A stretch of DNA of 64,000 nucleotides from Haliotis rubra (taxonomy: Eukaryota): the NCBI RefSeq assembly GCF_003918875.1, contig NW_025766470.1, positions 124,001 through 188,000 on the forward strand. Direction: 5' to 3'. Position numbers and translations under genes: made by a program. Positions 5,637-63,232 of the stretch are shown here, in pieces. Numbering within the stretch: position 1 is the first letter of the stretch; each line of letters starts with the position of its first letter. The notes under the pieces were generated by a model. The model was not told the origin of the DNA. It was given only the letters and a program-made list of their open reading frames with translations, and made no database searches.

Positions 5637-8600
5637 TTACGCCTACAGGTGGACAATGGACACGACACAGCTGAGACATGTTTGTGTCTGCCAGAAGAAA
5701 AAGTAACAATGAACTGTTGCTCATAGTTTTTATTTACCAACAGGAGGGTTTGGTAGCGAGGCGAAAATCTAGAAGAAGAAAGAAATGATTGAAATTAATC
5801 ATTTGTGTTCAAATTGCGCTCACAAATACCGAATACCTGAGTTTGCATGTTGAAGGGTCAGAAAAATAACGTGTCTTGAGTCGAAAAGATTAGGTACCTA
5901 TCTTTTGGTATGGGTGCGTCACGTAACGCTGTAACTTCATGTTGGGCGTTATAGTACATTGTGGAACTATTAGCGGCGGTGGGGTAGCCTAATGGTTAAA
6001 GCGCCCGCTCGTCACACTGAAGACACGGGTTCGATTCCCCACACGGGTATAACGTATTGAGCCCATTCCTGGTCTCCCCCGCTGTGATAATCCTGGAATA
6101 TTGCTAAAAGCGGCGTAAAACCATACTCACTCACCCACTCGCTTGTCTCTACTCGTAGCACAGGGTCCGAACAAACAGTGATAACATGTTTTTAAATCTT
6201 GTGTTACGGAATTGCATAAACTTAGACTAACTTCAAAATTGCTAACATGAACGTGTTAATTTTCAAGCTTAAACACTGAATTGTATTGTTTGTCATTTTT
6301 GTTCAAAAAGGTCAAAATGCGTCCTAGTTCGGAGTGCGATGATGACTTACCTGCTGGTACTTATTGACGAATTCCGCGAGACTGACGACGCCATCACCTG
6401 AAAAGATGATGACATGGGTTTGTTTGGGTTGTTAATTTGTAATTCCTTCAAGTTTTGTCACGTTCGGCCACGTTTGTTTTGCGTTTTGTCCCGGTTGTTT
6501 CACCCTTGCTGCCCGTTTTGTCCCAGTTCTCACGGCAAGCTTGGTTGTATGGTAGCCGATTCGTCCTGTTCCATCACGAGGCATCCAGGCGTGTGACGGT
6601 TTACAGGGCAGGCGAAATACGGCACGTTGCGTCCTCTGGCATTTCCTCTCTGCAGCCGATGATCGCCTTCTTCCTGCAGTTGATGATCGCCTTCTTCCTG
6701 ACGCAAGGACTAGATGTATGCCCGTAGCAAACTTACAAACGCAAAATAGTCTTCATCTTGGGGGTTTTATGCTGCGCTTATGTCTCAGGATACAATGGCT
6801 GCTATTACTTGGGAGGCCTTTTTTATACCGTGGACAGAAAGCTGGCCGGCATCCACGTTTCATCCGTAGCAAGTCTTGACAGAACGCGCAAAATGTGTCA
6901 AAACCTTGATCAAAACGTGAGAAACGTGAGGGAACCCATCAGAACGCGACAGGCCGGGAGGAAACGTAATGGCATCCGTAGTGGACGGCGGGCCGAACCG
7001 TAGTGCGCCTTTGAGCTTCCGGGACTCAGCAGCCTGTGTTTCCCAACAGCCCATCACGGATACCGTGATAGACCTTGAGAAAACTTAGCAGGACCTAACA
7101 GAACTTGAGTTTGGAGGAAAAACGGCCAAAACCCATGGCGCACTACGTTTCGGGGAAACGAGGCTGTCGTGGCCTCCGGGGACATAGTGTAACCCTAGCA
7201 CAACGCTGATGACCCGGGTTCGATGACCCGGGTTCACTCATGACCGGCTAAATCGTCGATTCTGGATAAGACAATCAAGTGAGTCACATCGTGAATATCC
7301 ATTTGACCACCCGATCTCGTATCTTTTGACAAGCATGGGTTGATGAAGACGTGGTCATAGTCGAGGTCAAGGTTCATTACCGTCGGTGTCGAACGCGGGG
7401 ATGACGTTTTCTGGAGGACATCGTCGTGGTAGGCGTCAACAAGCATGGGTTGCTGAAGACGTGGTCATAGTCAAGGTCAAGGTTCATTACCGTCGGTGTC
7501 GAACGCGGCGACGACGTTGTTTACTTCGGTCCTCTGGAGGACATCGTCGTGGTCGGCGTCAACAGGCTTGAAAACCGCTTGAGCAATGTATTTTGGTACC
7601 TTATTAACACTCATATACTCGGCCAATGTCATCTTGCCATCATCTGAAATTAAAAGACATATTTTAATTTATGATATTCAATAACAAAAGATTATAACTA
7701 TCTTAAGCTATGTCGTGAGTGTTAAGCAATTTGGTTCTAAATCAAAATGGCCTGGTTTAAAGTCCAGTTTTGTGAAGAACTATACTAATATATTTTCCGG
7801 GTAGTCATGGAGGAATTTTGGTGTACGAGTACTAATGAACTGGGTTGCTCGGTAGACATCCGTCTATAGTGCAACCTTTTAATGTGGATCCTGTCCTTCT
7901 GGAATATCAACTTTTCTAAAGATTGCTGTGTGGAACATATCACGAGACATAGTATAAATTTACGAGTCGGGAGACCTGATAGGTGTGTCGGCAAGGATAT
8001 TTTACAGTGAGTGAGTGAGTTTAGTTTTTTAGCAATATTCCAGCAATATCACGGCAGGGGACACCAAGAATGGGCTGCACACATTGTACCCATGTGGGGA
8101 ATCGAACCCAGGTCTTCGGCGTGACGAGCGAACGCTTTTACCACTAAGCTACCCCACCGCCCCCTTATATTTTACAGTGAAGAGCGGCATTAGTACGCTG
8201 TCGCTCGTGAAACCGTATCTTCCCCACGATGTCATTCTAAATCAACGGATACAATAAACCTGTCCATGTATATATTACACAGTCGAACTGTGGTGCTACA
8301 CTCTCTCTTGGTGACTCATTTCGTCAACACATAAGAACGGTGGGGTAGCCTAGTGGTTAAAGCATTCGCTCGTCACGCCGAAGGCCCGAGTTCGATTCCC
8401 CACATTGGTACAATGTGTGAAGCCCTTTTCTGATGTCCCCCGCTGTGATATTGCTGGAATATTACTAAAAGCGGCGTAAAGCTAATCTCACTCCGAGAAA
8501 CATGTCTCCGAACCCTTCCTTTTGATTCCGTGGCAAATTAGGATTTATATTGATTGCGAGAGTGATAGTATATGTTAGAGAGATTGTCTCGTGTATTGTA

Positions 8601-11098
8601 AAACTCATGTTTTGAATAATGAGTTGAAAATAATAAATCCTCAAAAGATATTCTGAACAAAACCTACGGTTGAGGTCATAATGGTCAAAAACATTCAGAA
8701 ATTCTGAAACATCAGCAGTGCCGCTTCCATCACTATCGATTCTGCTGAAGGCTTGCTTGAAAGTTGTCGCCAAGTCCGGCGCAGTTCTAAAAGAAATTAA
8801 ACAATGAACATCAAAAATAGGATATCGACACCTACATGAACAGTAAACAACACTTGTAAAATACTGACACCTACACCGACAGTAAACATCGCTTTTAGAA
8901 TACTGACACCTACATGGACAGTAAATAACACTTGTAAAATACTGACACCTACATGAACAGTAAACAACACTTTTAGAAAACTGACACCTACATGGGCAGT
9001 AAACAACACTTTTAGAATACTGACACCTACATGAACAGTAAACAACACTTATAGAATACTGACACCTACACCGACAGTAAACATCGCTTTTAGAATACTG
9101 ACACCTACATGGACAGTAAATAACACTTGTAAAATACTGACACCTACATGAACAGTAAACAACACTTTTAGAATACTGACACCTACATGAACAGTAAACA
9201 ACACTTTTAGAATACTGACACCTACATGGGCAGTAAACAACACTTTTAGAATACTGACACCTACATGGACAGTAAACAACACTTGTAAAATACTGACACC
9301 TACATGAACAGTAAACAACACTTTTACAATACTGAAACCTACATGGGCAGTAAACAACACTTATAGAATACTGACACCTACACCGACAGTAAACATCGCT
9401 TTTAGAATACTGACACCTACATGGACAGTAAATAACACTTGTAAAATACTGACACCTACATGAACAGTAAACAACATTTGTAAAATACTGACACCTACAT
9501 GAACAGTAAACAACACTTGTAAAATACTGACACCTACATGAACAGTAAACAACACTTTTAGAATACTGACACCTACATGGGCAGTAAACAACACTTTTAG
9601 AATACTGACACCTACATGAACAGTAAACAACACTTTTAGAATACTGACACCTACACCGACAGTAAAACATCGCTTTTAGAATACTGACACCTACATGGAC
9701 AGTAAACAACACTTGTAAAATACTGACACCTACATGAACAGTAAACAACACTTTTACAATACTGACACCTACATGCTAAAGTAAACAGCATAATTAGCGT
9801 ATCGACACCTACATGGGCAGTAAACAACACATTTACACGGACACCCACATGGACAGTAAACAACACTTTTACACTGACACCTGTACAAGCTGCAGCGAAC
9901 AACAATAACAGATATCGACACAAACAAACAAAAATGGCATATATTTTTATGTGAAACATCGTTTTAAGTCGGCTTGATTTCAGTCATACTACTTTGGAAT
10001 CCGGCATTTCGAGGGGCATCAATTTATTCATCTGCTTAGGTTATATTGTCGAAATGCCCTATCGGCGTACCATTCTAAATGATACTACAGACAACTATAA
10101 AGTAACGAAGACAGATATCACAAATGTTTGCAACATAGTTCAAATCCCAAGGTGGTGTTAAACGTTAATGTTGAAAGAATCACGTAAAATGAACCGGTGG
10201 TGTGTCTGTGGAGTTCGATACATCCGGATTTAGTTTATTTAGAATGGTTTAGACTTTGACAATCGACCATAAACGTTGATCTCTATCTTTTCTCTGGCTG
10301 ACTGGCTGGCTATCGATATATATCACAGAGATCGATCATCGTTAAACGAATATTGATCGATTATCGATAAAATATCGGAGAAGTAATTTTGAACAAAAAC
10401 GACTAAAACTCTTTAATAAGGCTCGGATTACCAACAAAACCGCAGCCCTGAACATACTTTAGGAGCAGCCCGTGAATATAGACCTAACTTTGGGTATTTT
10501 CTGAGTAAATTTAAACATTATCTTATCACAATAGTTTATTTACGATATTATCGATTACAAAATGTTCTCATCGCTAAACGTTAAGAATGATTCCTATGGC
10601 CGATATTTCCGATTACCGATCTTTTTAGTCTGCCCAAGCTCCTCACACAGCATGAGGTGAGGTGAGGTGAGGTGAGGTGAAATTGGGTTTAACGTCGTGC
10701 TTGAGAATATTTCGCTCATATGACGACGTGCATGCGTGTGTATGTGTATGTGCGGCTGCTTGTACTAGCCCAGACTTAAGCTGGGTTTATAGTGCTAGCC
10801 CACTGAGATACCATGCCGCAGTGAGGCATGAATATCCCACTCAGACACATTATACTGACTCCGAGCCGACCAGTCCTTGTTGTACCCATTAATGCCGAGC
10901 GCCAGGCAGGAACCAACAAGTACCACATTTTAACGTCTTTTGGTATGACGCGGTCGGGGATCGAACCCGCGACCTTCTGCTCTCCGGGCGGACGCTCTAA
11001 CCACACCACCACGGCGGCGGTCTTCCTCACACAGCATGAACTTACGATGGGGCGCTTAGTGCACCGTAAGCGAAAGCCAGCACAAGAAGGCAAATCAT
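5637..11098 (-). CDS. Gene B: secreted 4-EF-hand Ca-binding protein. Coding exons 11098-11046, 8786-8668, 7643-7491, 6397-6351 and a short terminal exon starting at 5642 (A-stop) or 5687 (TQTCLSCVVSIVHL-stop)
   Basis: Translation: MICLLVLAFAYGALSAPSTAPDLATTFKQAFSRIDSDGSGTADVSEFLNVFDHYDLNHDGKMTLAEYMSVNKVPKYIAQAVFKPVDADHDDVLQRTEVNNVVAAFDTDGDGVVSLAEFVNKYQQ. Canonical splice sites, phases 2/1/1/0, exon sizes 53/119/153/47. The last exon is uncertain. Confidence 0.85.
7330..7570. repeat. Local ~110-bp tandem duplication of the 3' end of gene B exon 3 and its splice donor
   Basis: gtcaaggttcattaccgtcggtgtcgaacgcgg occurs at about 7366 and 7476; the left copy has an internal deletion. Confidence 0.85.
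8008..8165 (-). mobile_element. Short (~155 bp) tRNA-derived SINE with an (ACTC)n tail; representative of about 20 copies (others near 5974, 8338, 18745, 22495, 30430, 35165, 37420, 45270, 46012, 49712, 55475, 56478, 57498, 61260, 61676, 63265, 63884)
   Basis: Head ggggtagcctagtggttaaagcgttcgctcgtcacgccgaagacccgggttcgattccc (tRNA-Asp-like); TSD atattttacagtga at this copy. Confidence 0.9.
8810..9890. repeat. 39-bp minisatellite (~27 units) in gene B intron 1
   Basis: Unit acttttagaatactgacacctacatgaacagtaaacaac with variants. Confidence 0.97.
10655..11022 (-). mobile_element. tRNA-derived SINE (Meta-domain-like) with a (CACCT)n tail
   Basis: A- and B-box head ggtgtggttagagcg...ggttcgatccc, gtcataccaaaagacg domain, and 15-bp TSD cctcacacagcatga. 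Confidence 0.85.
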
Positions 11099-11203: not shown

Positions 11204-11350
11204 NNNNNNNNNNNNNNNNNNNNNNNNNNNNNNNNNNNNNNNNNNNNNNNNNNNNNNNNNNNNNNNNNNNNNNNNNNNNNNNNNNNNNNNNNNNNNNNNN
11301 NNNNNNNNNNNNNNNNNNNNNNNNNNNNNNNNNNNNNNNNNNNNNNNNNN
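11204..11350. other. Assembly gap
   Basis: N run. Confidence 1.
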
Positions 11351-16494: not shown

Positions 16495-19400
16495 CTGCAA
16501 AACAAAACTAAAGTTTGTAAATAGGAGTGGAACTTATACAATACGACTGAATTATTGTTGAACAAATCATTCAAAAGAGAAGCATCTGATATTTTTAACA
16601 ATTATAATTTACCGTCATCCTCTAGACTCCTCCACAGGGTTTTAGTTCTTGCTTCTGTTCTGATGCCGATTGATTGTATTGAACTGTTTTTAAGGCAAGA
16701 ATTTATGGATGCCAATTTCTTTATTTTGATGTGAACCGATTTTGCAAGTCTTGGGTTCTGAATATGCTGGTCTGGGGTATTACATTTTGCTGACACTCTT
16801 ACCTTACTGTTTTGGCAGACTTTGTTTAATCGCGTCGAGTTTCTGAAACACCAAAACATTTAGTACTTCAAAATGTACACCTAAACCTATAGAAGATGAC
16901 TGGCGGGAAGTATCAGTTTCCAAGTCGTATATTTTCCATAGTGATGGCTGGATACATGCGGACGTCGAACGGCCCTCCCTAATACAATGGGGTGTACCCG
17001 ATCTTGGCTGCTCCGTGTGTTAGTCTGGACTGTGAGTGAGTGAGTGAGTTTAGTTTTACGCCGCACTCAGAAATTGGCGTCTGGACTGTGTCGTTTAGTC
17101 AAAACGTCATCGTTTCCTCTACGGCTAGTGTTTGCCCGAGGCAGGGCGCCCTGCCTTTTTCATTTGATGCCTTCTCTTTATTACAATAATTGATGTTAAC
17201 ACTTGGTGGTTTTTAGTTTCTATTTCATGTTGAAGTTTAGTGAAATAACTGTGCTCTTTGAGTCTTTAAGAATCATATGCATGGATAACTTAACATAATA
17301 CTTGGAAATCTGCTCCTTTTGAAATAATGTCGCCCAGCCCTTTTTCTATCCTGGGGGTGACACTAACGGCAGTCGATTTTGTATATTCTATGCTATTTTA
17401 TTTGTTATAAATGTATGCATGAAACATCTCTTCACTATGAGGTGGTGTAGTCGAAAATGATATTTTATCTGTCCGAGTGTAAACAATGATGTTTCCTTGT
17501 CCTTATCCAAACTGTGTTGTTTGATCTGCACTGGTGCAAACCATGATGTTACATGTGCGCCAGTCCAAGACATGATGTTTCATAAGTAATGTCACATCAG
17601 AGTTTGTCAAACGTATTGAGTTTAATCTGCTCTTCTTGACACCATGCTTTTGTGAGTGTTGGTATAAACTGTGCTATTATTCCGTGTTAACGGATTTGCT
17701 GTTTCTGAGAAATACGTACTCCTGTCTACACTACGTATAGAGTACGTGAATCATCTTTCAATGTTTCAGATTTACTCACGATTGTCATCCAGGCGACAAA
17801 CTCACTGCGGGTGATTTCACCATTTCCTGAAGAAAATGCAGAATATAGCACTTGATGTTGTAATATAAGAGTAATATTTTCAGCATTTAATTACCATGGG
17901 AATGGCATTGCCAGTGGTTGATAGCATGAGCAAACATATAAGCTTCGTAACAGCCTGGTAATGAAATAATTAATTCGACACACAGGGGACCGCACCAGTC
18001 AGTAGGGACAGTGAGTGAGTGAGTGAGTGAGTATGATTTTTCGCCGCTTTTAGCAATATTCCAGCAATATCACGGCGGGGAACACCAGATATGGGCCAGT
18101 AGGGACAGAGTGGCTGTCGAGTGAGTGAGTCAGTGGGTGAGTGAGTTTACTTTTACGCCGCACTCAACAATATTCCAGCTATATGGCTGCGGTCTGTAAA
18201 TAATCGAGTCTGGAGCAGACAATCCAGTGATCAACAGCATGAACATCGATCTACGCAATTGGAATACAGTGACATGTGTCAACCAAGTCAGCGAGCCTGA
18301 CCACCCGATCCCGTTAGTCGCATGGGTTGCTGAAGATCAATTCTAACCCGGATCTTCACGGGCTGTGGCTGTCGAAGTCACAACAATATGATGACTACGC
18401 TCGTAGATAATGGAGTAAGTTCATGTCCTTTTGTCTTGTCACTCCATTGCATTAAAACATGCTTTAGGATTAAGTAAATATGTTCCGTGTATCAGCGTAC
18501 TGTTTGATTTAAATAGTGAGGATGTTCCCAGTGCATCAAAGACGCAGCACCCAGCGTTTGCATCCAGGACGGTTGAAGTCTTGAATGTCTGAGATAGAAT
18601 TGGTCTAAAGCAACCCATTGTTTGTGTTGAAGGCGACTAACGGGACTGGGTGGTAAAGTTCACTGACAATATGTCAATCACACGATGTCGTCACACAGCT
18701 GTAAGATTGCCGCGTGCGGCGTTAAACAAAGCGCTAAGCACCAAGTAAGTGAGTGAGTTTAGCTTTACGCCGCTTTTAGCAATATTCCAGCAATATCACG
18801 GCGGGGGACACCAGAAATGGGCTTCACACATTGTACCAATGTGGGGAATCGAACCCGGGTCTTCGGCGTGACGAGCCAACGCTTTACCCACTAGGCTACC
18901 CAACCGCCCGCTAAGCACGAAGGCAGGTCACACAATGTCTGTAAAAAGGAGGGCATCATACCGTTTGTATCGAAGAGATTGTAAACACTGTTCATGTTTG
19001 CAAGCCACAGGACATTCTCATTGAGAGTATCAAACTCCTGGAATAGACCGACAGTCTCGGGGCAGATCTCGGGGGTGTGGTGACACACTCCAAAGTAGAA
19101 CTCCTTCTCGGTCAGACGGTCGTCATCTGGAATGATATTCATAATGACATTTCCACTGGAACGACATATCTGTAACGACAGACACTGTAACGATTATGCA
19201 ACCTGTAACGACATACATACTGTAACGATACATCAAACTATATAGGGAGAGAGAATGAGAGAGACAAGGATAAGGAAGAGAGAGATAGACAAAAAGAAAA
19301 AGAGAGATATAGACAGAGAAAGCGAGAGATTGTAGAGTGTAGTTATGGAGGTCGGTGAAGAGAATGTGTCAGATAGATGGGAAACTGGTATAGAGAGGGG

Positions 19401-22087
19401 TCAAACTACAGAGGAGTCGGTTACTAGAGGGTTCCGTATTTCAAACCGGTTGATGGAAAAAGTGTGCTTGATTTCTAATCGATGGATGCCTATAGATACG
19501 TCAGTTAACAGGGAGGTCAATATAAAGGTGAGGTGAGGTGAAATTGGGTTTAACGTCGTGCTTGAGAATATTTCGCTCATATGACGACGTGCATGAGCGT
19601 GTATGTGTATGTGCGGCTGCTTGTACTAGCCCAGACTTAAGCTGGTTTTATAGTGCTAGCCCACTGAGATACCATACCGCAGTGAAGCATGAATACCCCA
19701 CTCAGACACATTATACTGACTCCGAGCCGACCAGTCCTTGTTGTACCCATTAATGCCGAACGCCAGACAGGGACCAACAAGTACCATATTTTAACGTCTT
19801 TTGGTATGACGCGGTCGGGGGTCGAACCCGCGACCTTCCGCTCTCCGGGCGGACGCTCTAATATAAAAAGAGTGACGGAATACAAAGAGGAAACTGCACA
19901 CAGAGGGTATCAGATTACAGGGAGGCCGGTACAGAGAGAAGGGCGGATATTACAACGGGGAAGACTTAAACAGTGTGCTGAATTCCATGGAGTCCAGTAT
20001 AAAGAGAATGACGGATTGCAGGGAGAAAAGTTTACAGAGAGTGGAGGATTACAGGAAGGCCGGTACAGACAGGAGGGTGGATATTACAACGTGGAAGGCG
20101 TAAAAAGAGCGCTAGATTCCAAGGAGTCCAATATAAAGAGAATGATGAATTACAAGGAGGAAAGTTTACAGAGGGTATTGGATTACAGGGAGGTCGGTAC
20201 AGAGAGAAGGGCGGATATTACAACGGGGGAAGGCGTAAAAAGAGTGTCAGATTCCAAGGAGTCTAGTATAAAGAGAATGACTGATTGGAGGAGGTAACGT
20301 TTACAGAGAATGTTGGATTACAGAGAGGAAAGTGTAGAAAGAAATAATCTACAATGTTACCATTAGCGTCATACTGATGGAAGGCCCCGAGCAGTTCTTG
20401 GCTGGAGACATCCCCGCTCCTGTCAGTGTCTAGAAGCTTGAACAGGTGCTCGGCTACAGCCTGGGTGGTTTTGTGATGATCATGTTGACTGAAACAAGCA
20501 TCGTCCTCCTCATCAACAATATCACAACATTGGGATGATTTGACGTCCACGATGGCGTCCCGAATCAGGGGCCCGTTCCTCAAAGGGGCCCGTTCCTCAA
20601 AGCGATCGTAGCGCTACGACAGTCGTAAGTCTATGTTAAAGTATGGGAGTTACGACAGTCGTATCGCTACGATCGCTTTGAGGAACGGGGCCCAGATTTC
20701 ACTTCAGTTACCATTAATTAATAACATCCAGTCTTCACTTCAGTCGACGTTTAAAGGGGCCATTTCTGACACCGTTTTAAAAACATACCGCGGAGAGAAA
20801 TAATATTTTAAAAATCAATGTTGCCATCTCTATCCTGCCTATATATACATTAGTGAGTGAGTATTGTTTTAAGCTGCTTTTCGGAATATTACAAGGCGGA
20901 GGAAACAAGGAACCAACCAACCACAGGGCAAACCCAGCGCCACTGATCTGGACATGTTTAGTCAGGGTTGAAATGTGTCACTTTCGATGCATCATATTTT
21001 TTAGCATTAATGTCACAACCATCAAAGAAAATACCTTATTTAGAAACATGCCAAAAAAAAAGAATTATCACACTAGATAGCAAGTACAATTTCAGCGGAA
21101 AATACAACAAAATCTATATTTGCAGTTTCTAACAAAGCACTAGTAATATTAACTTGTCTCTTGACAGTATGCGATCGACAGTTTGCCCCGTTTCAAAGGA
21201 AAGGTTAAAAAAATGGGGATTTGAAAAAAATCTATATGAAATGACTCGAAATTGCAGCTGACATTCATTAGTCAGCACGAAAATCCAATGTCTACGGTGA
21301 ATTTGGAAGAGAATCATTGTAGTGTAAGATGTATAATTTATCATATCTTGGCATAACATTGCAACCCAAAAGGAAATCCCCAAATAAACAAACAGTATCA
21401 TGTATCACTCTTAATGGATCCCATATTGCTGGTAAACTCCGTGGATTTGTTTTGTAGGAAAGAAATCCGACCGATTATCGACTTAATTATGTTTATATGT
21501 TCCATGCAAAGGATGCCTCCATGGTAGAAGTAATAAATGAATAAATCAAATAAATACTACAAGGAATCTGTTTTACCTAATTCTCAGTTTAACTATTTAC
21601 CCTATTGAGAGATGACAGAAGTTATAGGCTGCAATAAGCAGTGACTAACCAAAGTATTTGTATTGGAACATGTTTGGGAAATTCTAAAGTTTATAAATAT
21701 TCCGTATCAAATGCCAAAATAATAAGGCTTCTCGCTAATAATGAACAAATATTAAAATTCACGATCGCGCCTGGAGACACCCGTGTTCTGATATGTGAAG
21801 GTGGTATTAAGTATTCGATGCCCGTAAATTTCAATTCAAACCGGTGATTTGTCCCGTTCATGTTTTACCATATGGTGACATCTTAGATATAGAAAAACAA
21901 GGCTCTATCACCAAGTTCACTAGGTTAAACTAAAAATTTCTACTAGGAAGCATTCAACACTAACACGACAAAACAATATGCTTTTTGCTCATTAAAAATA
22001 TTGTTTGAGTTTTAAGCTTAGTATTAAATGTACTACCAACCTCAAAGCCAAGGATACAAGACAGGAAAAAACGACTAGGAATTTCAT
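16303..22087 (-). CDS. Gene A: secreted EF-hand Ca-binding protein. Coding exons 22087-22041, 20488-20361, 19126-18962, 17826-17780 and a putative terminal exon from 16494 into the 84-bp repeat (stop at 16303 as assembled)
   Basis: GT-AG junctions with consistent phases 2/1/1/0. Translation: MKFLVVFSCLVSLALS (signal peptide) QHDHHKTTQAVAEHLFKLLDTDRSGDVSSQELLGAFHQYDANDDDRLTEKEFYFGVCHHTPEICPETVGLFQEFDTLNENVLWLANMNSVYNLFDTNGNGEITRSEFVAWMTI, then INMMTHSCRLAGLAGTYPNIC... Exons 1-4 are well supported; exon 5 is inferred. Confidence 0.82.
19527..19860 (-). mobile_element. 5'-truncated copy of the same SINE
   Basis: Near-identical to 10670-11000; TSD aatataaa. Confidence 0.85.
19860..20330. repeat. 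Degenerate purine-rich tandem repeat in gene A intron 2
   Basis: Recurrent ggagtccaatataaagagaatga / gattacagggaggccggtacaga blocks with a period of about 130-145 bp. Confidence 0.7.
20568..20695. mobile_element. Small palindromic MITE (copies also near 56325 and 57333)
   Basis: ggggcccgttcctcaaagcgatcgtagc ... gctacgatcgctttgaggaacggggccc. Confidence 0.75.
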
Positions 22088-27424: not shown

Positions 27425-29722
27425 ATGAACAACCTCATCATCTTCTCGTGTCTTCTCGCCGTGGCGTTTTCAGCGTGAGTTTAAGATATGATGACAAAGG
27501 TGGTCTCAGGCTGCAATGCGCTGTACAGAGTTGCCTCCCTTAGACACATCACATTCGTCACCACTCGCCGTAACATCCAAAACATTCGTCACCACTCGCC
27601 CCTTTCCGTAACCTCAAAGCTTGTCTCGGAATAACAGGAGTTGGTTACGAATGGAATGCCTCCAAAACATTCCTGACCCACTCGTGTTATTCCGGGGCTT
27701 CTTGGAGGTTACGGAAAGGGGCGAGTGGTGACGAATGCCTCCAAAAGTCGCTATTCGGCTTGTCCCGGAATAACACGAGTTGGTCACGAATGCACGTACC
27801 ATTTCGCCCTATTGTTTGTTTGTACGTTCGTTGGCTTCATGGAAACTGAAAGCATATAAGACCCGTATCAATAACACGCTCTCAGACTCTGTGTTCAAGG
27901 ACTCAAAAATCGTATGACTTTTGTACATATATCCGATAATGAGAGAAAACCCGCTTTGGAACAATGGGATGACGTCACCAGAGGTGTCTCAACTGTGCTG
28001 ACTCTATACACAGGAAGATACATTAGGTATATTTTTCTTCTCGACTTCAGCACTGACTCCCCCGTTGTAGCTGCCCTTAAAAGAGCGTTTTCCTCCGTCG
28101 ACACCGACAAAGACAATCACCTCTCAGAATCGGAATTTGAAGCCATATATGACCTTTACGATAAGAATGGTAAGTTTTCTTTCCCGTGTTTATTTGACTT
28201 TTGTTTGGCGAGCTAGCTGTCTTCTCACCAGGGATCCTCAAGATATTAGGATTACACAAACCACACCCCACGCCTTCGGGTCATGATGACACACAATTAA
28301 TCAAGCGAGTGAGCAGCCCTGACCATCGAGAGGTTGCTCCATTGTATGAATAGTTGAACTAAATCAGTTTTCATGTACAATACGTACAAGAAAGACATTC
28401 ATGTTTCAAGTCAAGTTTATTGCATTCATTAACCAAGGAATTGTCTCCACTAGGTGACGGTCACTTGAGGTTGGCTGAGTACCTTGCGGCATCCGGAGTC
28501 CCCCAGGCTTCAGCTAAAGACAACTTTGACTACTACGATACCAACAAGGATGGCGATATCACGAAAGCTGACGTGAAGAGAATATTCTCAGACTACGATG
28601 GAAATGGTAAGTGAACATTTTGCTGAAAACCAGAAGACTATTTTCGAGTGTTCGAATAAGGGTTCGACCCATTTATGTTTCCAGGTTTGTCAGCTCTCTA
28701 ACCATGCTCGACCCGTGAAGGTCCGGGTTGGAATGAACCTGCACAAATCGATGCTCATGCTGTTGATCACTGGATTGTCTGATCCAGACTCGAATATTTA
28801 CAGACCGCCGGCAAAAAGCTGGAATATTGCTGAGTTCGGCGTAAACCTAAACTCACTCACTCACTCATTCACTCACTGTAGCCATGCTCGTGGATGTCTG
28901 TCGTTATATACTGGGCAAAAATAGTTAGGGATATATATGTAAATTTTGAAATTATGAATAATGATTTATTTCTTCATTGACACACTGATAAAATATCAAC
29001 CATAAAAATACCAATATCCCTAACTTATTTTGTCCAGTATATAACTGGAATACAGTAATAATCAAAAGTAATTACCGATTTACGAAATACGACAGACTGG
29101 CGTTACTTGAGACAAAACTGGGCTGCGGTCGTAACCAGTTAACGTCAAATGTGACAGTGAAGCCGTCACCGTAAGTGGTATGTTGATGTTTGCCTTTTCA
29201 GCCCTACTTGCTGATGTCACGGTATGCATGCCTGGCAGTTTGCTGTTGGCACGTGCATATGGCTTTTTGACAGTTTTTGCCTTTTCAAGTAACGCCAGGC
29301 TGGCGGCTTTTTCTTGTTCCATCACGCAGTTGGAGGTTTACTTATGTAGCAGGGCATGGAGTCATCCCACAGATGACATCCTTACCTTGTCAGCCTCTTG
29401 ACGGGGTTAACCTCTTTGGTCATGTGAGCAAGGCGCCCGACTTCGGATCAGAAGGTCCAAGTTCGAATCCCAGCACGGGAATCGGAAAATTTATGGCTGC
29501 TACGCTTAATATGTCGGAAATAAGTTTCAATCATTATGTGTGTAACAGGCCTTTCTTGGGAGAGTATTTATCAACATTGTCTGACACGTGTGTGTGTGTG
29601 CGTTCGTGCACGCGCGCGCATGTGTATTGTTGATAACATATCAGCTGATTATATCATGGTTTCGTGTTCTAACAGGGGATGACAAAGTGACTTTCGGCGA
29701 GTTTGAGCATCACTATGCATTG
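27425..29722 (+). CDS. Gene C: secreted 4-EF-hand Ca-binding protein. Coding exons 27425-27474, 28051-28169, 28454-28606, 29676-29722; terminal exon not resolved (candidate acceptors before 30302 or 34408)
   Basis: Translation: MNNLIIFSCLLAVAFSATDSPVVAALKRAFSSVDTDKDNHLSESEFEAIYDLYDKNGDGHLRLAEYLAASGVPQASAKDNFDYYDTNKDGDITKADVKRIFSDYDGNGDDKVTFGEFEHHYAL. Exon sizes 50/119/153/47 match gene B in exons 2-4; all junctions GT-AG. Confidence 0.88.
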
Positions 29723-31133: not shown

Positions 31134-31258
31134 TATCATTTGGATTCCAGGTCGAGAAAGCCATCGCTGGTGCTGGAACTGGCGTTGGGAAGTAACTGGT
31201 AAGGTAAATCGGTTGTAATGTAATCTTTCGGAATCGAGGGAGTTACTGTGATCACATA

Positions 31259-46615: not shown

Positions 46616-46755
46616 NNNNNNNNNNNNNNNNNNNNNNNNNNNNNNNNNNNNNNNNNNNNNNNNNNNNNNNNNNNNNNNNNNNNNNNNNNNNNNNNNNNNN
46701 NNNNNNNNNNNNNNNNNNNNNNNNNNNNNNNNNNNNNNNNNNNNNNNNNNNNNNN
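46616..46755. other. Assembly gap
   Basis: N run. Confidence 1.
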
Positions 46756-49572: not shown

Positions 49573-49650
49573 AGTTCTAGTTAGTACAATGTTACAAATG
49601 CGTATCTGTGTGAGGATTACAAGACGAGCTATGTGTTCTGTGTTCCAGCG

Positions 49651-52600
49651 ATGTTCCAGTACGCCCTGCTCCTCCTCCTGCCCTGTGTGCTGGGGTAAGA
49701 ACATCTGTTGACGGGCGGTGGGGTAGCCTGGTGGTTAAAGCGTTCGCTCGTCACGCCGAAGATCCGGGTTCGATTTGCCATATGGGTACAATGTGTGAAG
49801 CCCATTTGTGGGGTCCCCCGCCGTGATATTGGTATTTGACGATACGATTATTGGTCCTCGGTATTAAAAGAAAACATACATAATTGATATCAGCAGAGCA
49901 GATTGATATTTGTATTATATTTTCATCCAACAGACAAACTTTCGGTGTGTAGGGAGGTATGCACGCATTTCCTCAAACGATACATATTTGTTCCACGAGT
50001 TTTTGGCCGCCCCAAAACACGAACCTAGCTGCTTTTGCACAGAGGATCAACAAACATTTTGTTTCGGCATGGTCGATAATTCCTGTCCTTCAGACGAGTT
50101 GCCCGCCATTTGACCGATCAGTGTATAAAGGACACAGTTTGAAACAAAGGGAGACAAATCAACACTAACAGTAACGGCTAAACGCAATATGGGTTCGAGG
50201 ATACCATCTCCAATGTCTCTGAAATAATATCTTTTACTCGGTACTATTCTCTTTCTTCTCCGCGGCTTCCATAGAAATCTGGCAGTCTCGACCACGTACT
50301 TTGTGTACCTTTTTCATAGATGTAAATTATCACAGCTCGTATGACCGGAAGATGTAAATAGAGAATTCCTTTTCAGAAAATGGTAAAACGTAGCGTAAAT
50401 TTAGGATTACAAATTCTATTACCTGTTTGACTGAAGTCATTTAACTCAGGTCTACAGAAAAGAATTTCATCTCTATTTTGCAGATGCATCACAGTCAATG
50501 TTCGTGTGAATGTGATGCTCAATTCCGCACTCAACGCTATCCCAGCTAAGGGGTGGTGGGGTAGCCTAGTGGTTAAAGCGCCGAAAACCCCAGTTCGATT
50601 CCTCGCTTGGGTACAATGTGTGAAGCCCATTTCTGGTGTCCCCCGCCGTGATATTGCTGGAATATTGCTAAAATCGACGTATAACCATGCTCTCTCACTA
50701 TCCCAGCTATACATATAGGTTGGTTGTAAATAACCCAATATGGACCAGATAATCGCGTGATTGATATTATGAATAACGACCCTCGTCGTCGGAATGCAAT
50801 GCAAACCTCATCAATTACAGTACATTATGAAGGATGAGGACTATTTTTATGGATATACAACTTCTTTATTCTGTATAGGCGACGTTTCGACATAGATTCT
50901 AATGTTGTTGTCAAACAAGTGAACGACTAGTCTGTCGTACAGACCCTGAAGTAAATATATCCAAGAAAGCCCACGCAAGTCTAGAAAATGTGGCAAGTCT
51001 AGAATTCCTCAGCTTCTGAAAATGAAGAAAGTCTCAGGGCTCCTTTTCATTATATTTTTTTTTTGACTATGAACTTTTTTTCAGTAAAATATATTCATTG
51101 CAGAGACTAGTTGTTAGTCTATTGAACGACTTTCGTTCGTTCGTGTACATTATGGCTATGACGAATTCAAAGGAACCACAAATGTTAGTTCGTTATAACC
51201 GTAGTTCTATTTACGCATTTTGACTAAAATATGCAGGTATGACCGGGACCCTAAAACTGTTCGTTATATCCGTCCGTGCATATGCAGTAGGTCACTTCTT
51301 ACCGACAAGGTCCCTTTCACCAAGCGATCTTAACGCGAAGATGATCGTAACTCCCATATTTACGACAAACGGAAGGCCTAAATTTATGTGTTGAATATAT
51401 ACTGAGGGAAACAAATAAGGCAAAACATGAAAGTACAAGTGTTCCATTATTCTTTTCACAGGTTTCCTCAAAGGCTTTGTATGGCACTGTGGGTGAAAAA
51501 CTGAGAGTGATAGGGAACACTGCGATGAAGTGGTGTTCCCTTATTTGTTTCCCTCAGTATATTTCAAGGTTGGCTTATATACTGAACAACATTAGAAACG
51601 CATCACCCATATAATACGAAAAATCCCTGTCAGACTTAAATGTACCATATCTGAGCATCGTTGGTGCATTTTAGTGTGGTGCGTTTCTAATGTTGTTCAG
51701 TATATTTCGAGATTGCTCGATAACAATACTTACTAGGGATGCCACGAAACATCGATGCATCGATACTTTTTCTAAGACAATACAATTATCGATACATTCA
51801 AAACTGTATCGATATTTAGTTTTGAAAGTATCAGTTTAAATATGTTTAAGCATCGTTTACATTTTGCAATTGTATCATGTTCCTTGATGTTATGAGAGTT
51901 ATAAATGATTATTTTTCATGCTCAAAGATGGGAAATTAGAACTTTCTAATCTCTGAGAATAAAAAATGTTGATCTTTTCATGTACAATTATAAAAAATTA
52001 AATATTAATGTTCAAAATGTAACTAAATTTACGCAATAATGCCGCGAAAATAGGTATCGTGATACGTATCGATTCATGAAATTTAATGTATCGAGACATC
52101 CCTAAAACTTACACAATATCCGCACACAAGTCTACTGACCGGAGTCATAATCTAATACACACTGTGTTGATGTCTCTGGGTATGTAGTGGGGACAATGGT
52201 CGGAGTGAAAACAAAAACGCTGAAACTACAACATAATACGAAATGTCTGTTCTAAGTTGATACATGTACGCTGTTGTCTTCCCTGGTAGCGCTCCTGCCA
52301 CGGACCCCGTCAGCGCCTGGGAACACCACGTACACCAGGAAACGGAAAGGCTGTGGGAGTCGTTCGACTTCAACAACAATGGAAAATTCGACAGGTCCGA
52401 CGTCCAGACGTTCATCCATGACTACGACACCAACGGTAAGAGTACCCTACCTCGTTGGTAATGGTCAGTGACCATTCCATGCATTGGCATGCTGACAGTC
52501 GCTGTAATCCCGCTCCATATCATTTACAAACCAACCTCAAATCGGTCATGTTCCTTACAATGACGTTTGCATGACATTCGTTCGTGCTAATCTCGGTTTA

Positions 52601-55600
52601 TCTGAAAACGTCACGCGATCCACCAAGATTTCATCACAGGCATCTGGCTATAATGTGACGTTTTAACGGGTTTACAACACGTGGTCGATGAGCATGCAAA
52701 TAAGCTGCTTGCTAATAGCGATTTCTAATTGTCTGTGGCCTGGCGCAAATGAACAGTGTTTCGATTGGCTGTTTGGGCTTGATTTTTGGATACACTACAG
52801 AATACCGGATACCTTCCGCCAGCTTTGAAAACTTTAGAACTGCGCAAACGATGTGCGCAACTCGACTCAAGTTTTTAGTACTTCGGTATTTTAGTGTAGT
52901 TACATTTTTAGCCCTTTGATATCCGTTACTATCTTCTTTTGGGTTCGTTTATGGAGACTGACAAAATTAAATATCAATAGAAATCAGAGCTCCTTGCGCA
53001 TGATATTTCCTCCATTCAAATGGACAGCGTTGAGCAAAAGGGGTATTTTCTAATCAGTCTAAGTAAACTTAGGCTCAGTATTATTCGTCACACTGCTATA
53101 CTTTCGCCAACTTTTCGCCCACTTTCGCCAACTTGCGCATGATATTTCTTCCATTCAAATGGACAGCGTTGAGCAAAAGGGGTATTTTCTAATCAGTCTA
53201 AGTAAACTTAAGCTCAGTATTATTCGTCACACTGCTATACTTTCGCCAACTTTTCGCCCACTTTCGCCAACTTGCGCATGATATTTCTTCCATTCAAATG
53301 GACAGCGTTGAGCAAAAGGGGTATTTTCTAATCAGTCTAAGTAAACTTAGACTCAGTATTATTCGTCATACTGATATACTTTCGCAAACTTTCTCGATTT
53401 GGTAAGCTGTTCTGATTGGTCAATTGAAAAGGTTACCTGACGCGACCTTCCACAAGGTTTTGTTAGACTCAGTATAGCAGTGTAACGAATAATACTGAGT
53501 CTAATTTTTGTTAGACTGATTTTCTAATATTTGAGGATCAGATATTGTTTATAAGAAAAAGAACACTCATTTACATTTTCACGCACCATACAAAGTGTTT
53601 TTACGATTGTCAGTTATCTATGTTGGTTTCTAGGAGACGGTGAGGTTTCCCGGGCCGAGTTCGACTTCCACTGGGGGGTGACGGAGCCAACTCTCAACAT
53701 CATCGGAAACGGCCTGTTCCTGGAGTACGACGACGACCAGAGCGGTGTAGTGACGTCTTCCGACCTGGACGCCCTCTACAACAGGATGGACCATGACGGT
53801 AGCACAAAATACCATGTTTTTTTAAATGCCATTATTACGTTCTTTAACGCCCAATACATTCTGTTACAAATGACACATGTTTTATTCAAATTGTCAACAT
53901 AGAAATACACCTGGCACTAAATGTCAATGACTTGCACGCGCAAGTCGCTCTATCCATGGAAAGTGGAGGACAATACACATACATTTATGCTTTTTCACTG
54001 TTATTCACTGCTCAGGCACCTGTTTGAAATCGTAGCTTACAACGGGTACAATGTGTGTTGCCTATTTCTGGTGTCCCCCGCCGTGATATTACTGTAATAT
54101 TGCTAAAAGCGTCGTAAAACTAAACTCACTCACTCACTCCAAGATAGACAGTGAAATGTCCTAGACCGTTGTACCTCTGTGATCTACAAATGCCTAATTT
54201 TTTACTGCAAAATTATCTCAGATTATATACTTGATAATGATCTTACTTAGCAGATCTTTGAGCATTTAAATAGGAAGGTACTACGCCCTGGCTAGTTTCG
54301 ACTATCTCCTCAACCCAGAATTCCAGTAATTGCGACAGCAGTTGAATTAGCGATTTTTCATGATATTTCTGCGATTTTAGTTTCCTGATAATGATTTTCC
54401 TTAATACATCATGTGTTTTACAGATGACGGAACTGTCAGCAAACATGAGTTCAAGTCTTACTACAAACAGGTAGGTAGCATGAGGGAAGACCACCACAAG
54501 GTACATGTGTATGTATTTCATCGGCGGAATAAGGGTTTCTTATGCGTCATAGCTGGATAGTTGTCAGGAACGCTGAGTCATCGTTATATTGAAACAATAA
54601 TTAGGCTCTGCTTTTAGAACAGATACTTTCTTCAAAAATGGAAAGAGTTTTATCACTTTTATAAAATTTCTTTGAACTTGCAATCCTTTGAACGCCTTTG
54701 CATTTAAGCAGAGACCATATAATATAGCTATCATATGGTCTCTGATTTAAGTTTAGACCCCAAATCAAGTGTCAATCGTTCACACTTTGAATGAAGTGAA
54801 GTGCGATGCCACACTTTGTGAACATGCAGATTTCCTTCAATTTTCCTCCGTGTCAGAAATGTGGTTGTTTCCCGTTATCAAAATTAAATTTAAATTTGCT
54901 AAGAAAAGTGTAAGGATCGTGACGCTACCCTTCCGTTTCCGTAATTAGGGAAAACATCGTAAACTAGGTTTCAACTGTTTTCAACTATTACTTCATAAAC
55001 AAAATGTGACCTTTCTGAAACCGAAAGTGTATATCGTATTTTGTTACTGTTTACTAGGGCTGCGCAATATGACCGGTTTACCGGTATTTACCAGTTCAGA
55101 CATAAAAACGATACGTATTGCGATACGCTGATCGAAAACCAGTATTTTGACTTGCATTCGGAAAACTTCGTAACACTCGGAAATCTTCGGATATGTCCTT
55201 GTTTCATTTGTGCCAAATATTATTCATATTTCTATTTTATCATGATTTAAAGTTGTTATTAAAGCTTAATCAAGCATAGTGATTTTGTTGTGTTTTTGCT
55301 CTATAAATCAAGAAGTAACTCGATTATAAGTAGTTTTTTGTGTAAAAATACTTCATGCAATATATTGCAATACATATCGCAATACATGCTTTCGCATCGC
55401 AATATATCGCAATATGAAAATTCTCTGCAATACCCACCCCTACTGTTTACTTATGCCAGTCTCTCTTGTATAGGGTGAGGTAGCCTAGTGGTTAAAGCGT
55501 TCGCTCGTCACGCCGAAGACCTGGGTTCGATTTCCCACATGGGTACAATGTGTGAAGCCCATTTCTGGTGTACCCCGCCGTGATATTGCTGTAATATTGC

Positions 55601-55801
55601 TAAAAGCGGCGTAAAGCCAAACTAAACTCGCTAACGCTTCGTCTCCAGTTCGGCTTGTCCCGGAATAACACAAGTTGGTCCTGAATGCTTGCCATCCGAC
55701 TCTAAACACGTTCCATCTTTCAGCTCCTCACAGTGTTGTTCATCCTGCAGACTCAGCACATTGAGAATCAGGTCACCACCACCGCAGCACCATCAACATA
55801 A
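49651..55801 (+). CDS. Gene D: complete secreted 4-EF-hand Ca-binding protein. Exons 49651-49694, 52290-52435, 53634-53798, 54424-54470, 55724-55801
   Basis: Translation: MFQYALLLLLPCVLGAPATDPVSAWEHHVHQETERLWESFDFNNNGKFDRSDVQTFIHDYDTNGDGEVSRAEFDFHWGVTEPTLNIIGNGLFLEYDDDQSGVVTSSDLDALYNRMDHDDDGTVSKHEFKSYYKQLLTVLFILQTQHIENQVTTTAAPST*. AATAAA follows the stop at about 55813. It resembles molluscan secreted shell-matrix-type (IMSP5-like) EF-hand proteins; this is from recall, not a search. Confidence 0.9.
51735..52104. mobile_element. MITE-like element
   Basis: Terminal IR tagggatg / catcccta with atcgat-rich subtermini. Confidence 0.55.
52995..53522. repeat. 120-bp tandem repeat (~3.3 units) with an inverted arm, in gene D intron 2
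   Basis: gcgcatgatatttc...tttcgccaactt recurs with a period of about 120-140; 53462-53522 is an inverted copy of the aatcagtctaa...attcgtcacactgctatac part. Confidence 0.8.
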
Positions 55802-60352: not shown

Positions 60353-63232
60353 ATGTTCCAGTACGCCCTGTTCCTCCTCCTGCCCTGTGTGCTGGGGTAA
60401 GAACACTTGCCTCGTATAAAACCAATCCGCAGTCGTTTCCAACGAAGATCACTATGTACGGCTTCCCCATTGGACGAGTCAATGTCACGTGACTTATGAA
60501 TCGACATAATTAACCGTATGAAAAACACTGTGTGCAAAATAGGCATTATGTTGGAAAACACACGAAAAATCTCTAAATCATCATCATCATCCCGTCACAG
60601 TAACGACCATGCATTTGACACGCGGTCTGACACTTGATTAAAAATATCCATCAGCTCGTCGAATTTTCAAAAATCTCCAAACGATTCAATTCGGCGTAGC
60701 GGTAATTGTAAGCTTCTCACTGATTGTCTGGTTAAAGAGTTTACTCCTATGATGACTACGCCTATAGATCGATAGGTTATCACATGCATCACTGCCTGTA
60801 TATCAATTTCCTTATTTCCCACCGGAACTTATTGTTTGTTTATTTTTGTAACGCCACATAAACGTGTTCGCATACGGACGGTATCCGTAAATAATCGAGT
60901 TTGACCCGTCAACATGTACATGTACTTGCTTGCTAACGGTGTTAGCAGCTACACCGAAACGTCGCTCATATTGATAATAAAGAAGTTGTATATCCATAGA
61001 ACTCTCCCCGTTGTTCATCATATACAGGTACGCTCTAACATGCTTATCTCCCCTTGTAGTGACACGGATCCGGTGACGGCCTGGGAGGCCCACGTGAACA
61101 AGGAAACAGACAATATGTGGAAGACCTTTGACTCCAACAACAACGGAAAATTCGACAGGAGTGACGTGAAACTATTCATCCATGACTACGACACTGACGG
61201 TAAGTGTAGCGTATCAATGGCGGCAATCGAACGGTTATATCCCCAGATGGGGACATATATGGGGCGGTGGGGTAGCTTAGTGGTTAAGGCGTTCGCTCGT
61301 CACGCTGAAGACCCGGGTTCGATTCCCCACATCGGTACATGTGAAGCCTATTTCCGGTGTCCCCCGCCGTGATATTGCTGGAATATTGCTAAAAGGGGCG
61401 TAAAACTATACTCACTCATTCACTCACCCCCTAGGGGACATGGACAATCATGGTCCAGGCAGGGATAGAATTTGTAACTATATTCTGCGTCGGTGTGATT
61501 ATTTCGCTCAGTACCAACACCATTCAAACGTTTCCTTAAACTATCTGACCAGTGAAGATCCGGGTTAGAATTGATCTTCCGAAACCCATACCTATGGTAA
61601 GAGGCGACTAACGGGGTCGGGTGGTCAGGCTCGGTGACGTGGTGGACACATGTCATCATATCCCAAATGTGTAGAGGGGCGGTGGGGTAGTTTAGTGGTT
61701 AAATCGTTCTCTCGCCACGCCGAAGACCCGGGTTCGATTCCCCACATGAGTACAATGTGTGAAGTCCATTTCTGGTGTCCCCCGCCGTGATGTTGCTGGA
61801 ATATTGCTAAAACCGGCGTAAAACCAAATACACTCACTCAATTGCGTAGATATATGCTCATGCTACTGATCACTGGATTGTCTGCCTCGATTATATACAG
61901 ACCGGCGTAAAAATAAACTAATTCATTCACTCACTCACTTTAACTAGCTGGTCGGTTTTGCCGAATGATGGCAATCGATAGGTTGTCTATTCTCCAGTCA
62001 CACAAGTTGCATGTTATCTGACAGCTATCTCAAGTGTTCAGAAAGAACTACTCTTTATCAATGAATTATGATTAGTCACGCCCGGGGATAAATTAACAAA
62101 TAACATTTTCTATTGCAATTGCTTTTTTTAAATATGAAAAACAAGTGTTTGCCACTGATATGGCAATGTCCCCCGCCGCTAAAGAAAGGAATACCTATAT
62201 TTACTACTTTTAATATTTTGGTCACATACAAGATGCCTGAAATAACTGGTGTCTGCATAATCACCCAATGCAGGCTGTCAACATAACTGAAAACATTGGG
62301 TGCAATGTTTTATGAGATATTGTGCTTAAATAGGTTTGAAAAGCGGTCAAGTTTCATGGTGACTTTGAAGATAAGGCCAAGGTCACCCAATAAACTGGTG
62401 TCTACGTGATCCCCCAATGTAGGCTGTCACCAAATTTGAAGACATTGGGTACAACAGTCCATAAGATGTCGCGTTAACAAGAGTTTGAAAAGTGGTGGAA
62501 GTGTCGTGATGACCTTGAACATGAGGTCAAGGTCACCCAAATAAACTGGTGTCTGCGTAATCCCCCATTGTAGGCTGTCACCAAATTTGAAGACATTGGG
62601 TATAAAAGTCCATGAGATATCACGTTAACAAGAGTTTGAAAAGTGTTCAAAGTGTCGTGGTGACCTTGAAGATAAGGTCAAGGTCACCCAAATCAACTGG
62701 TGTCTGCGTAATCCCCCATTGTAGTCTGTCACCAAATTTGAAGACACTGGGTACTACAGTTCATGAGATATCGCGTTAACAAGAATCGGGACGTACGGAC
62801 GGACGGACGGACAGACGCCGCTGAATACATAGTCCCCCGTTTCGCGTTGCGGCGGGGGACACTAAAGCAAATGCTTCTGACTTTTTTGAAAAAATGCCTG
62901 TTTGTTGTAACCTACCCTTCAATATACAGCAAATCAAGTTCGTCCTAGAATATAGAAAAAAGGCAAATGCTTATTTTCCTTTTTTGAAAAAAAATATTCC
63001 TGTTTGTTTTTAACCCACCCTTCAACATACAAATCACGTGTGTCCACGGTCTGTGTTGGTTTCTAGGAGACGGTGAGGTAACCCGGGCCGAGTTCGACTT
63101 CCACTGGGGGGGTGACGGAGCCAACTCTCAACATCGTCGCAGACGCCCTGTTCCTGGAGTACGACGACGACCAGAGCGGTAATGTGACGTCTTCCGACCT
63201 GGACGCACTCTACAACAGGATGGACCAAAACA
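60353..63232 (+). CDS. Gene E: close paralog of gene D, incomplete in this window. Exons 60353-60396, 61060-61199, 63067-63232; exon 3 has a +1 frameshift in a G run
   Basis: Translation: MFQYALFLLLPCVLGDTDPVTAWEAHVNKETDNMWKTFDSNNNGKFDRSDVKLFIHDYDTDGDGEVTRAEFDFHW... Exon 3 is 166 nt versus 165 in D (G7 versus G6 at about 63106-63112). This is either a pseudogene or a homopolymer error. Confidence 0.8.
62094..62865 (+). mobile_element. Non-autonomous Helentron/pearl-like element with internal ~151-bp tandem repeats
   Basis: Sub-terminal IR tgtcccccgccgc / gcggcgggggaca, about 3.6 repeat units containing ggtcaaggtcaccc, a (GGAC)n tract and a 3' hairpin. Confidence 0.75.

Follow-up and report, generated by a model that had tools for sequence, protein, structure and literature searches.

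The window analyzed here, a 64,000-nucleotide (nt) stretch of Haliotis rubra DNA (NCBI RefSeq assembly GCF_003918875.1, contig NW_025766470.1, positions 124,001 to 188,000 of the forward strand), contains five genes for small EF-hand proteins, each opening with a putative signal-peptide exon. We designate these genes A and B (reverse strand) and C, D, and E (forward strand); the labels are our own, and the genes called A and B in an initial annotation of the same DNA are B and A here, respectively. Canonical EF-hand loops were detected by a motif scan at five places of the window, on both strands. In the gene models rebuilt from the sequence all internal junctions are canonical (AG/GT) and the intron phases are 2/1/1/0, with introns 2 and 3 of A-E lying in phase 1 behind the third residue of EF loops 2 and 4. 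The exons are listed below in window coordinates.

Gene A exon 1: 11046..11098, reverse strand, 53 nt; start codon and putative signal peptide MICLLVLAFAYGALSAP; donor GTAAGT; phase 2
Gene A exon 2: 8668..8786, reverse strand, 119 nt; EF1, then loop 2 up to its third residue (DLN)
Gene A exon 3: 7491..7643, reverse strand, 153 nt; remainder of loop 2, EF3, and loop 4 up to its third residue (DTD)
Gene A exon 4: 6351..6397, reverse strand, 47 nt; remainder of loop 4 and the exiting helix
Gene A exon 5: 5730..5768, reverse strand, 39 nt with stop; IFASLPNPPVGK*; AATAAA overlaps the stop; kept in paralogue Z (see below) and in agreement with RefSeq protein P0009
Gene B exon 1: 22041..22087, reverse strand, 47 nt; MKFLVVFSCLVSLAL; donor GTTGGT, identical in H. 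asinina
Gene B exon 2: 20361..20488, reverse strand, 128 nt; EF1 (DTDRSGDVSSQE), followed by the beginning of loop 2 (DAN)
Gene B exon 3: 18962..19126, reverse strand, 165 nt; remainder of loop 2, degenerate EF3 (DTLNENVLWLAN), and the start of loop 4
Gene B exon 4: 17780..17826, reverse strand, 47 nt
Gene B exon 5: 16804..16842, reverse strand, 39 nt with stop; KLDAIKQSLPKQ*
Gene C exon 1: 27425..27474, forward strand, 50 nt; MNNLIIFSCLLAVAFS; donor GTGAGT
Gene C exon 2: 28051..28169, forward strand, 119 nt; EF1 and the start of loop 2
Gene C exon 3: 28454..28606, forward strand, 153 nt; remainder of loop 2, followed by EF3 and the beginning of loop 4
Gene C exon 4: 29676..29722, forward strand, 47 nt
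Gene C exon 5: 31151..31195, forward strand, 45 nt with stop; VEKAIAGAGTGVGK*
Gene D exon 1: 49651..49694, forward strand, 44 nt; MFQYALLLLLPCVL; donor GTAAGA
Gene D exon 2: 52290..52435, forward strand, 146 nt; EF1 and the start of loop 2
Gene D exon 3: 53634..53798, forward strand, 165 nt
Gene D exon 4: 54424..54470, forward strand, 47 nt
Gene D exon 5: 55724..55801, forward strand, 78 nt with stop; LLTVLFILQTQHIENQVTTTAAPST*
Gene E exon 1: 60353..60396, forward strand, 44 nt; MFQYALFLLLPCVL
Gene E exon 2: 61060..61199, forward strand, 140 nt
Gene E exon 3: 63067..63232, forward strand, 166 nt; one base longer than exon 3 of D
Gene E exon 4: window-equivalent 64202-64248, forward strand, 47 nt; beyond the window
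Gene E exon 5: window-equivalent 69823-69900, forward strand; beyond the window

The spliced models predict proteins of 136 (A), 141 (B), 137 (C), and 159 (D) amino acids (aa). The layout described in the initial annotation, namely five genes each starting with a signal-peptide exon and encoding four EF-hands, intron phases 2/1/1/0 with introns inside EF loops 2 and 4, an exon 4 of 47 nt in A-D, and an exon 3 of 153 or 165 nt (166 nt in E), was recovered in the rebuilt models, the exon sizes agreeing once the labels A and B are swapped. That observation is confirmed in nearly every detail.

The possibility that gene B is truncated or broken and lacks an EF1 exon was rejected, since synteny with H. 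asinina and length arithmetic place a 165-nt exon 3 at 18962-19126 and leave B intact. A tandem duplication of approximately 1 kb (55660-55856, 56669-56866) provides gene D with an identical second copy of its last exon at 56734-56811. In A, D, and E, an AG accompanied by a pyrimidine tract is found 1-2 nt ahead of the start codon (e.g., 11099-11113, 49636-49650); this arrangement suggests an untranslated upstream exon, and if so, the assembly gap near A (see below) could sit in an intron or promoter.

Single exons, scored over their own length, or database proteins served as queries in the similarity searches, and the spliced B and D models entered only into alignment, composition, the ratio of nonsynonymous to synonymous substitution rates (dN/dS), and tree building. 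The profile check for EF-hands proposed along with the initial annotation was positive for every gene: exons 2 and 3 of A-E each match Pfam EF-hand models on their own (EF-hand_1, _5, _6, and _7; E-values from 1e-5 to 0.24, the weakest for exon 3 of A), and several of these matches are at or above the gathering score, which places the proteins in the PF00036 / PF13405 / PF13499 superfamily. The Ca2+-ligand pattern is near-canonical in 14 of the 16 loops of A-D; according to the loop check, EF1 of A deviates only at hydrophobic position 8, and EF3 of B is degenerate. The mature A-D proteins are acidic (isoelectric point about 4.4-4.7), contain between 0 and 2 cysteines, and have no N-glycosylation sequons.

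The N-termini of A-D (MICLLVLAFAYGALSA, MKFLVVFSCLVSLALS, MNNLIIFSCLLAVAFSA, and MFQYALLLLLPCVLG) combine a hydrophobic core with small residues at positions -3/-1, and their first 14-17 residues reach an 8-residue Kyte-Doolittle hydrophobicity mean of 3.0-3.4. N-termini of the same type were found in Lingula P0163, Gigantopelta P0156, Solemya P0055, and H. asinina P0046. In the AlphaFold2 model of C (predicted local distance difference test 77, predicted template modeling score 0.71), residues 1-17 are disordered and are followed by four helix-loop-helix units. Comparison with Foldseek against the PDB and with VIA-align wide returned generic EF-hand pairs only, and no specific four-EF-hand relative stood out. 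These results bear on whether A-E could be ordinary cytosolic calmodulin-like sensors whose hydrophobic N-terminus is no signal peptide. The names given to the locus in RefSeq (calmodulin-2/4-like, calmodulin-like protein 30, and visinin-like protein 1) and the best Foldseek matches, calmodulin and calcineurin B, are what such sensors would give; however, those names were assigned automatically from the best hit, calmodulin-type structures share only 14-23% identity with these proteins at template modeling (TM) scores near 0.2, and the hydrophobic first exon is kept in every paralogue as well as in Lingula and Gigantopelta. We regard cytosolic sensors as extremely improbable.

The C-termini of A-D (PVGK, LPKQ, GVGK, and APST, respectively) include no KDEL/HDEL-type tail, which argues against residence of these proteins in the lumen of the endoplasmic reticulum (ER) or Golgi, where they could serve as Ca2+ stores or as partners of cargo receptors in the manner of the CREC proteins or MCFD2. 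These two families, too, are defined by a signal peptide together with EF-hands, and MCFD2 is among the structural matches (Z-score 7.0), but dozens of generic EF-hand pairs match at least as well, and CREC proteins have six EF-hands and MCFD2 two. Retention in the ER or Golgi is thus very unlikely. A separate observation concerns the C-termini of A, C, paralogue Z, and Gigantopelta P0156, all of which end in [V/I]-G-K, a pattern for removal of Lys and amidation at Gly; its presence in divergent members would fit passage through the secretory pathway.

Taken together, A-E are very probably five of at least 12 tandem H. rubra genes for small (136-159 aa), acidic proteins in which a cleavable signal peptide precedes two pairs of EF-hands and a short tail peculiar to each type, and which would function as exported soluble Ca2+ binders. 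Such proteins would enter the ER via the N-terminal signal peptide and, because the KDEL/HDEL retention signal is absent, would be exported from the cell. Outside the cell each would act as a soluble Ca2+-binding protein that buffers or carries Ca2+ or forms part of a secretion; the candidate secretions include extrapallial fluid and shell, mucus, and digestive or other secretions. In that case A-E would be molecules of the same kind as the abalone protein Hdh-SMP5 and the EF-hand proteins from molluscan shell matrices. The array of extracellular Ca2+-binding proteins proposed in the initial annotation is accordingly plausible, given small acidic proteins with four EF-hands, a signal-peptide-like exon, and a relative, Hdh-SMP5, that has a predicted signal peptide and is mantle-enriched (PMC10741955), and we consider the secreted Ca2+-binding interpretation reasonable.

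The extent of the array was estimated with a genome-wide profile built from ten family proteins, the matches to which are exon-3-sized pieces (from profile positions 57/58 to 109/110). The contig carrying the array (C1580) contains 11 such matches between 38 kb and 187 kb. The local array thus comprises at least 12 genes over about 156 kb, since gene B, whose exon 3 is too degenerate to score, is to be added to the 11 profile matches. Approximately 34 further places were found on 13 other contigs, giving about 45 exon-3 matches altogether; the matches on other contigs may partly represent duplicate haplotigs, and the signal peptide was not among the criteria of this count. Directly to the left of the window lies paralogue Z (P0012).

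Much of this cluster is already annotated publicly, under misleading automatic names. The models of A and C are identical to the H. rubra RefSeq proteins P0009 ("calmodulin-2/4-like") and P0007 ("calmodulin-like protein 30"), respectively, and E corresponds to P0006 ("uncharacterized LOC124278854"), a model that skirts the frameshift described below. The initial annotation called the cluster hidden, which does not hold for A, C, E, and the left-hand neighbors, all of them present as RefSeq proteins. For B, the length of 141 aa equals that of the syntenic H. asinina gene call, and the length of D equals that of H. asinina P0002. Orthologues in H. asinina, H. cracherodii, and H. rufescens are named visinin-like, calcium-binding protein 1-like, or calcineurin B-like, or are left uncharacterized. 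The "calmodulin-like" abalone genes at this locus are to be read as a conserved tandem array of probably secreted proteins. This finding leaves current views unchanged; its main effect is to correct the annotation labels and to extend a known class.

The four types A, B, C, and D share only 19-31% identity with one another, whereas D and E are 77-81% identical, in line with the initial description of the proteins as very different outside the loops except for D and E. Each of the four types has a counterpart in H. asinina (named orthologues for A, C, D, and E, and the syntenic 141-aa gene call for B). The gene order B(-) C(+) D(+) is kept in that species, where the C orthologue has identical exon sizes (50/119/153/47/45). 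The maximum-likelihood tree joins E to H. asinina P0005 and A to P0011, with strong support in each case, and therefore even close paralogues are older than the split between H. rubra and H. asinina. The phylogeny and dN/dS estimates suggested in the initial annotation thus gave grouping of E and A each with its own H. asinina protein, and dN/dS values of 0.25 between the C genes of H. rubra and H. asinina (a value indicating constraint), 0.50 between D and E, and 0.89 between A and Z. The synonymous divergence (dS) of A and Z is 0.18, vs. 0.33 for the C orthologues; the low A-Z value may result from gene conversion. The last exon is type-specific, yet conserved within a type across species, and the divergence extends along the whole protein; the earlier suggestion of diversification mainly at the C-terminus finds little support in this distribution.

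Several points weigh against the interpretation of A-E as genes for exported proteins, or against the integrity of individual genes. The secretion of A-D is predicted from sequence heuristics and by analogy, since SMP5 has a signal peptide predicted by SignalP (PMC10741955) and EF-hand proteins are known in shell matrices. Gene D is without an independent prediction in the H. rubra genome, being absent among the database matches: the exon-level search of database proteins returned no 100% match to it. The exons of C are covered by no contigs in two small RNA-like runs, carrying the same species label, that were examined over 27300-33299 (contigs only, tissue unlabeled, RNA status presumed); the contigs in this region cover only repeats and a Tc1-like element. 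Because the tissue is unlabeled and only contigs were available, this result is uninformative, and the two runs neither support nor refute transcription of C. In exon 1 of C, at 27440, one contig from the DNA run X18 has 10 nt inserted, which form a third copy of TCTTCTCGTG, at about 43/101 depth; the insertion would shift the frame of the signal-peptide exon and may represent a segregating null allele. Finally, E is frameshifted in this assembly: in its exon 3 a run of seven G (window 63100-63106) replaces the run of six G in D.

The last two points could indicate that part of the array is decaying, with E and perhaps one allele of C being pseudogenes, as expected under birth-and-death evolution. 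The dN/dS values of 0.5-0.9 between neighboring paralogues point in the same direction as the one-base shift in E and the X18 insertion. On the other hand, the frame of E stays open for 155 codons once X is placed at the break, H. asinina has a separate orthologue of E (P0005), and the shift falls in a G homopolymer. Two 97%-identical SMP5-like copies of this assembly (L016 and L017; C2759:115439-118465 and 164077-167103) differ by several homopolymer-length indels, one copy being in frame and the other not, as assembly error would give; these differences suggest homopolymer errors of the assembly or a broken duplicate. Since the extra base of E lies in a G homopolymer and such indels also separate the SMP5-like copies, an assembly error appears as likely as a real lesion. 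Decay of part of the array is, in our opinion, unlikely. The birth-and-death mode put forward in the initial annotation likewise finds little support: every type has an H. asinina counterpart, so that the array predates the species split, and the sole candidate pseudogene feature is the single-base homopolymer shift of E, possibly an assembly error. Judged by these comparisons, the array appears to be old and retained, with fast-evolving neighbors, and does not represent clear birth-and-death.

Two assembly gaps fall within the window, and no reading frame crosses either of them.

Assembly gap: 11204..11350; 106 nt upstream of the ATG of A; outside coding exons
Assembly gap: 46616..46755; C-D intergenic region, 2.9 kb upstream of the ATG of D; adjoins a Tc1-like transposase remnant

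On both sides of the first gap the sequence aligns collinearly with that upstream of paralogue Z (spanning 366 nt at A vs. 450 nt at Z). Repeats accompany several of the genes. Intron 1 of A (8827-9871) contains a 39-nt minisatellite of about 27 copies, which has one open frame and continues into exon 2, and the same array is present in the same intron of Z. An 80-84-nt satellite lies just downstream of the 3' ends of B (14573-16491, 22.5 copies) and A (5362-5577, 2.7 copies), with further copies downstream of Z. A nearly perfect palindrome about 100 nt long (20590-20690), situated in intron 1 of B shortly before exon 2, resembles a miniature inverted-repeat transposable element and is absent from the aligned H. 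asinina region. Fragments of Tc1/mariner-type transposases (HTH_Tnp_Tc3_2, DDE_3) at 12330-12839, 31441-32394, 43396-43779, and 47068-47805, and of a reverse transcriptase at 3187-3648, are located between the genes; the element at 31.4-32.4 kb is covered by contigs of the RNA-like runs.

Beyond abalones, a whole-library HMMER search with the family profile was dominated by long multi-EF-hand proteins, and about ten small matches were usable. Two of the relatives are informative with respect to gene structure. In the gastropod Gigantopelta aegis, P0156 (XP_041368415) consists of two modules with exons of 74/110/156/47 and 127/156/47/36 nt, and in the brachiopod Lingula anatina, P0163 (XP_013420093) has exons of 32/116/174/62 nt, phases 2/1/1, and introns that split the loops in the same way. 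Both proteins share with A-E the putative signal peptide, four EF-hands (in two modules in Gigantopelta), phases 2/1/1, and introns behind loop residue 3 of EF2 and EF4; the Gigantopelta protein has also kept the 47-nt exon and a C-terminal VGK, whereas the Lingula gene is without a fifth exon and has an exon 3 of 174 nt. Both differ from A-E by low sequence identity and long branches. Since H. asinina, Gigantopelta, and Lingula have the same intron layout, the architecture predates the mollusc-brachiopod split. In addition, a 1,017-nt Logan contig (L020, from SRR27896765) contains an uninterrupted open reading frame of 300 aa composed of a putative signal peptide and two D-type-like modules, and therefore relatives of these genes are transcribed and spliced somewhere.

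These similarities allow a tentative proposal, which we hold at somewhat less than even confidence: A-E may be members of an ancient lophotrochozoan family of secreted proteins with four EF-hands, a family characterized by a signal-peptide exon and phase-1 introns in loops 2 and 4 and represented in gastropods and a brachiopod, that has expanded to 40 or more loci in abalones and has been filed as calmodulin-like or uncharacterized. Some members, to judge by the [V/I]-G-K ends of A-type, C-type, and Gigantopelta proteins, may be C-terminally amidated. Extracellular EF-hand proteins are recurrent yet poorly understood in molluscan shell matrices and secretions, and if the proposal is true, the old family could be a major, largely unstudied extracellular Ca2+-handling system. 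The intron layout common to A-E, SMP5, and the brachiopod genes offers a clean family definition, which yields a candidate set for expression and Ca2+-binding studies.

Among the known EF-hand systems, calmodulin proper is a cytosolic protein of about 149 aa without a signal peptide and is very highly conserved. It resembles A-E in its four EF-hands in two pairs, acidity, and similar size; A-E differ in the putative signal peptide, in the short linker between the pairs, and in another relative orientation of the pairs (TM about 0.2), as well as in the 14-23% identity in structural alignments (14-17% to calmodulin structures), and the hydrophobic N-terminal exon is present in all copies. Members of the CREC family (reticulocalbin / calumenin) have six EF-hands and a C-terminal HDEL-type retention signal, as compared with four EF-hands and the tails PVGK, LPKQ, GVGK, and APST in our set. 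The invertebrate sarcoplasmic Ca2+-binding proteins are cytosolic, about 175-195 aa long, with a compact four-EF-hand fold and no signal peptide; the abalone proteins have 136-159 aa and a signal-peptide-like N-terminus, and no sarcoplasmic Ca2+-binding protein was among the top structural matches. The Pinctada fucata protein EFCBP has two EF-hands, vs. four in A-E. This extracellular protein has been implicated in the formation of the shell (Huang et al. 2007, as cited in PMC6231486). Secreted EF-hand protein families were also detected by mass spectrometry in the shell matrix of Lottia (PMC4094399); EFCB1, EFCB2, and the EFCB2-like family of Lottia gigantea are likened to A-E by description only, as secreted EF-hand proteins that form a multi-member family in a gastropod.

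Another close counterpart is Hdh-SMP5 of Haliotis discus hannai (GenBank ON803450 / UYL69037, as cited in PMC10741955), a protein of 134 aa with a 16-residue signal peptide predicted by SignalP and EF loops at residues 36, 56, and 112 (PMC10741955). Its expression is highest in mantle and is increased in trochophore and veliger stages and after shell damage (PMC10741955). This profile, together with the recurrence of EF-hand proteins in molluscan shell proteomes and the acidity of A-D, would be consistent with a narrower role of A-E as proteins of the shell matrix or extrapallial fluid that the mantle produces for biomineralization. However, nothing was found that ties A-E to mantle or shell, and gene C was without contigs in the two RNA-like runs. 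The gastropod EF-hand gene sarp-19 is reported to be expressed in hepatopancreas and induced by anoxia (according to the citation in PMC3517415), so that other tissues are possible, and the presence of about 45 family loci makes diverse roles likely. A specific shell function is possible but rather unlikely, and the shell role of A-E is unproven.

The identity of SMP5 with one of A-E was excluded: the published rapid amplification of cDNA ends primer has 0 matches in the window and two on contig C2759, where the H. rubra SMP5 orthologue was located with the published primers. Since its locus is on C2759 and not on C1580, SMP5 is a paralogue built on the same plan rather than one of the five genes. 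The comparison with A-E was made by primer location and gene structure, and the mantle expression of SMP5 cannot be transferred to A-E. With respect to exported Ca2+ binding, the reading that we prefer, the likeness extends to several levels. SMP5 is a small abalone protein with a predicted signal peptide; in the H. rubra orthologue exon 2 ends in phase 1 behind DLD and exon 3 in phase 1 behind DQD, i.e., behind the third residue of loops 2 and 4, and exon 3 is approximately near the 165 nt of B and D. The EF-hand loops of Hdh-SMP5 are 20 residues apart, as in A-E. Conversely, A-D (136-159 aa) fall within the small size (about 130-160 aa) of SMP5-type proteins with 3-4 EF-hands and share the SMP5 gene architecture. 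A cleavable signal peptide would be predicted for them on heuristic grounds, namely from the hydrophobic core, small -3/-1 residues, disordered N-terminus of the model, and a separate conserved exon.

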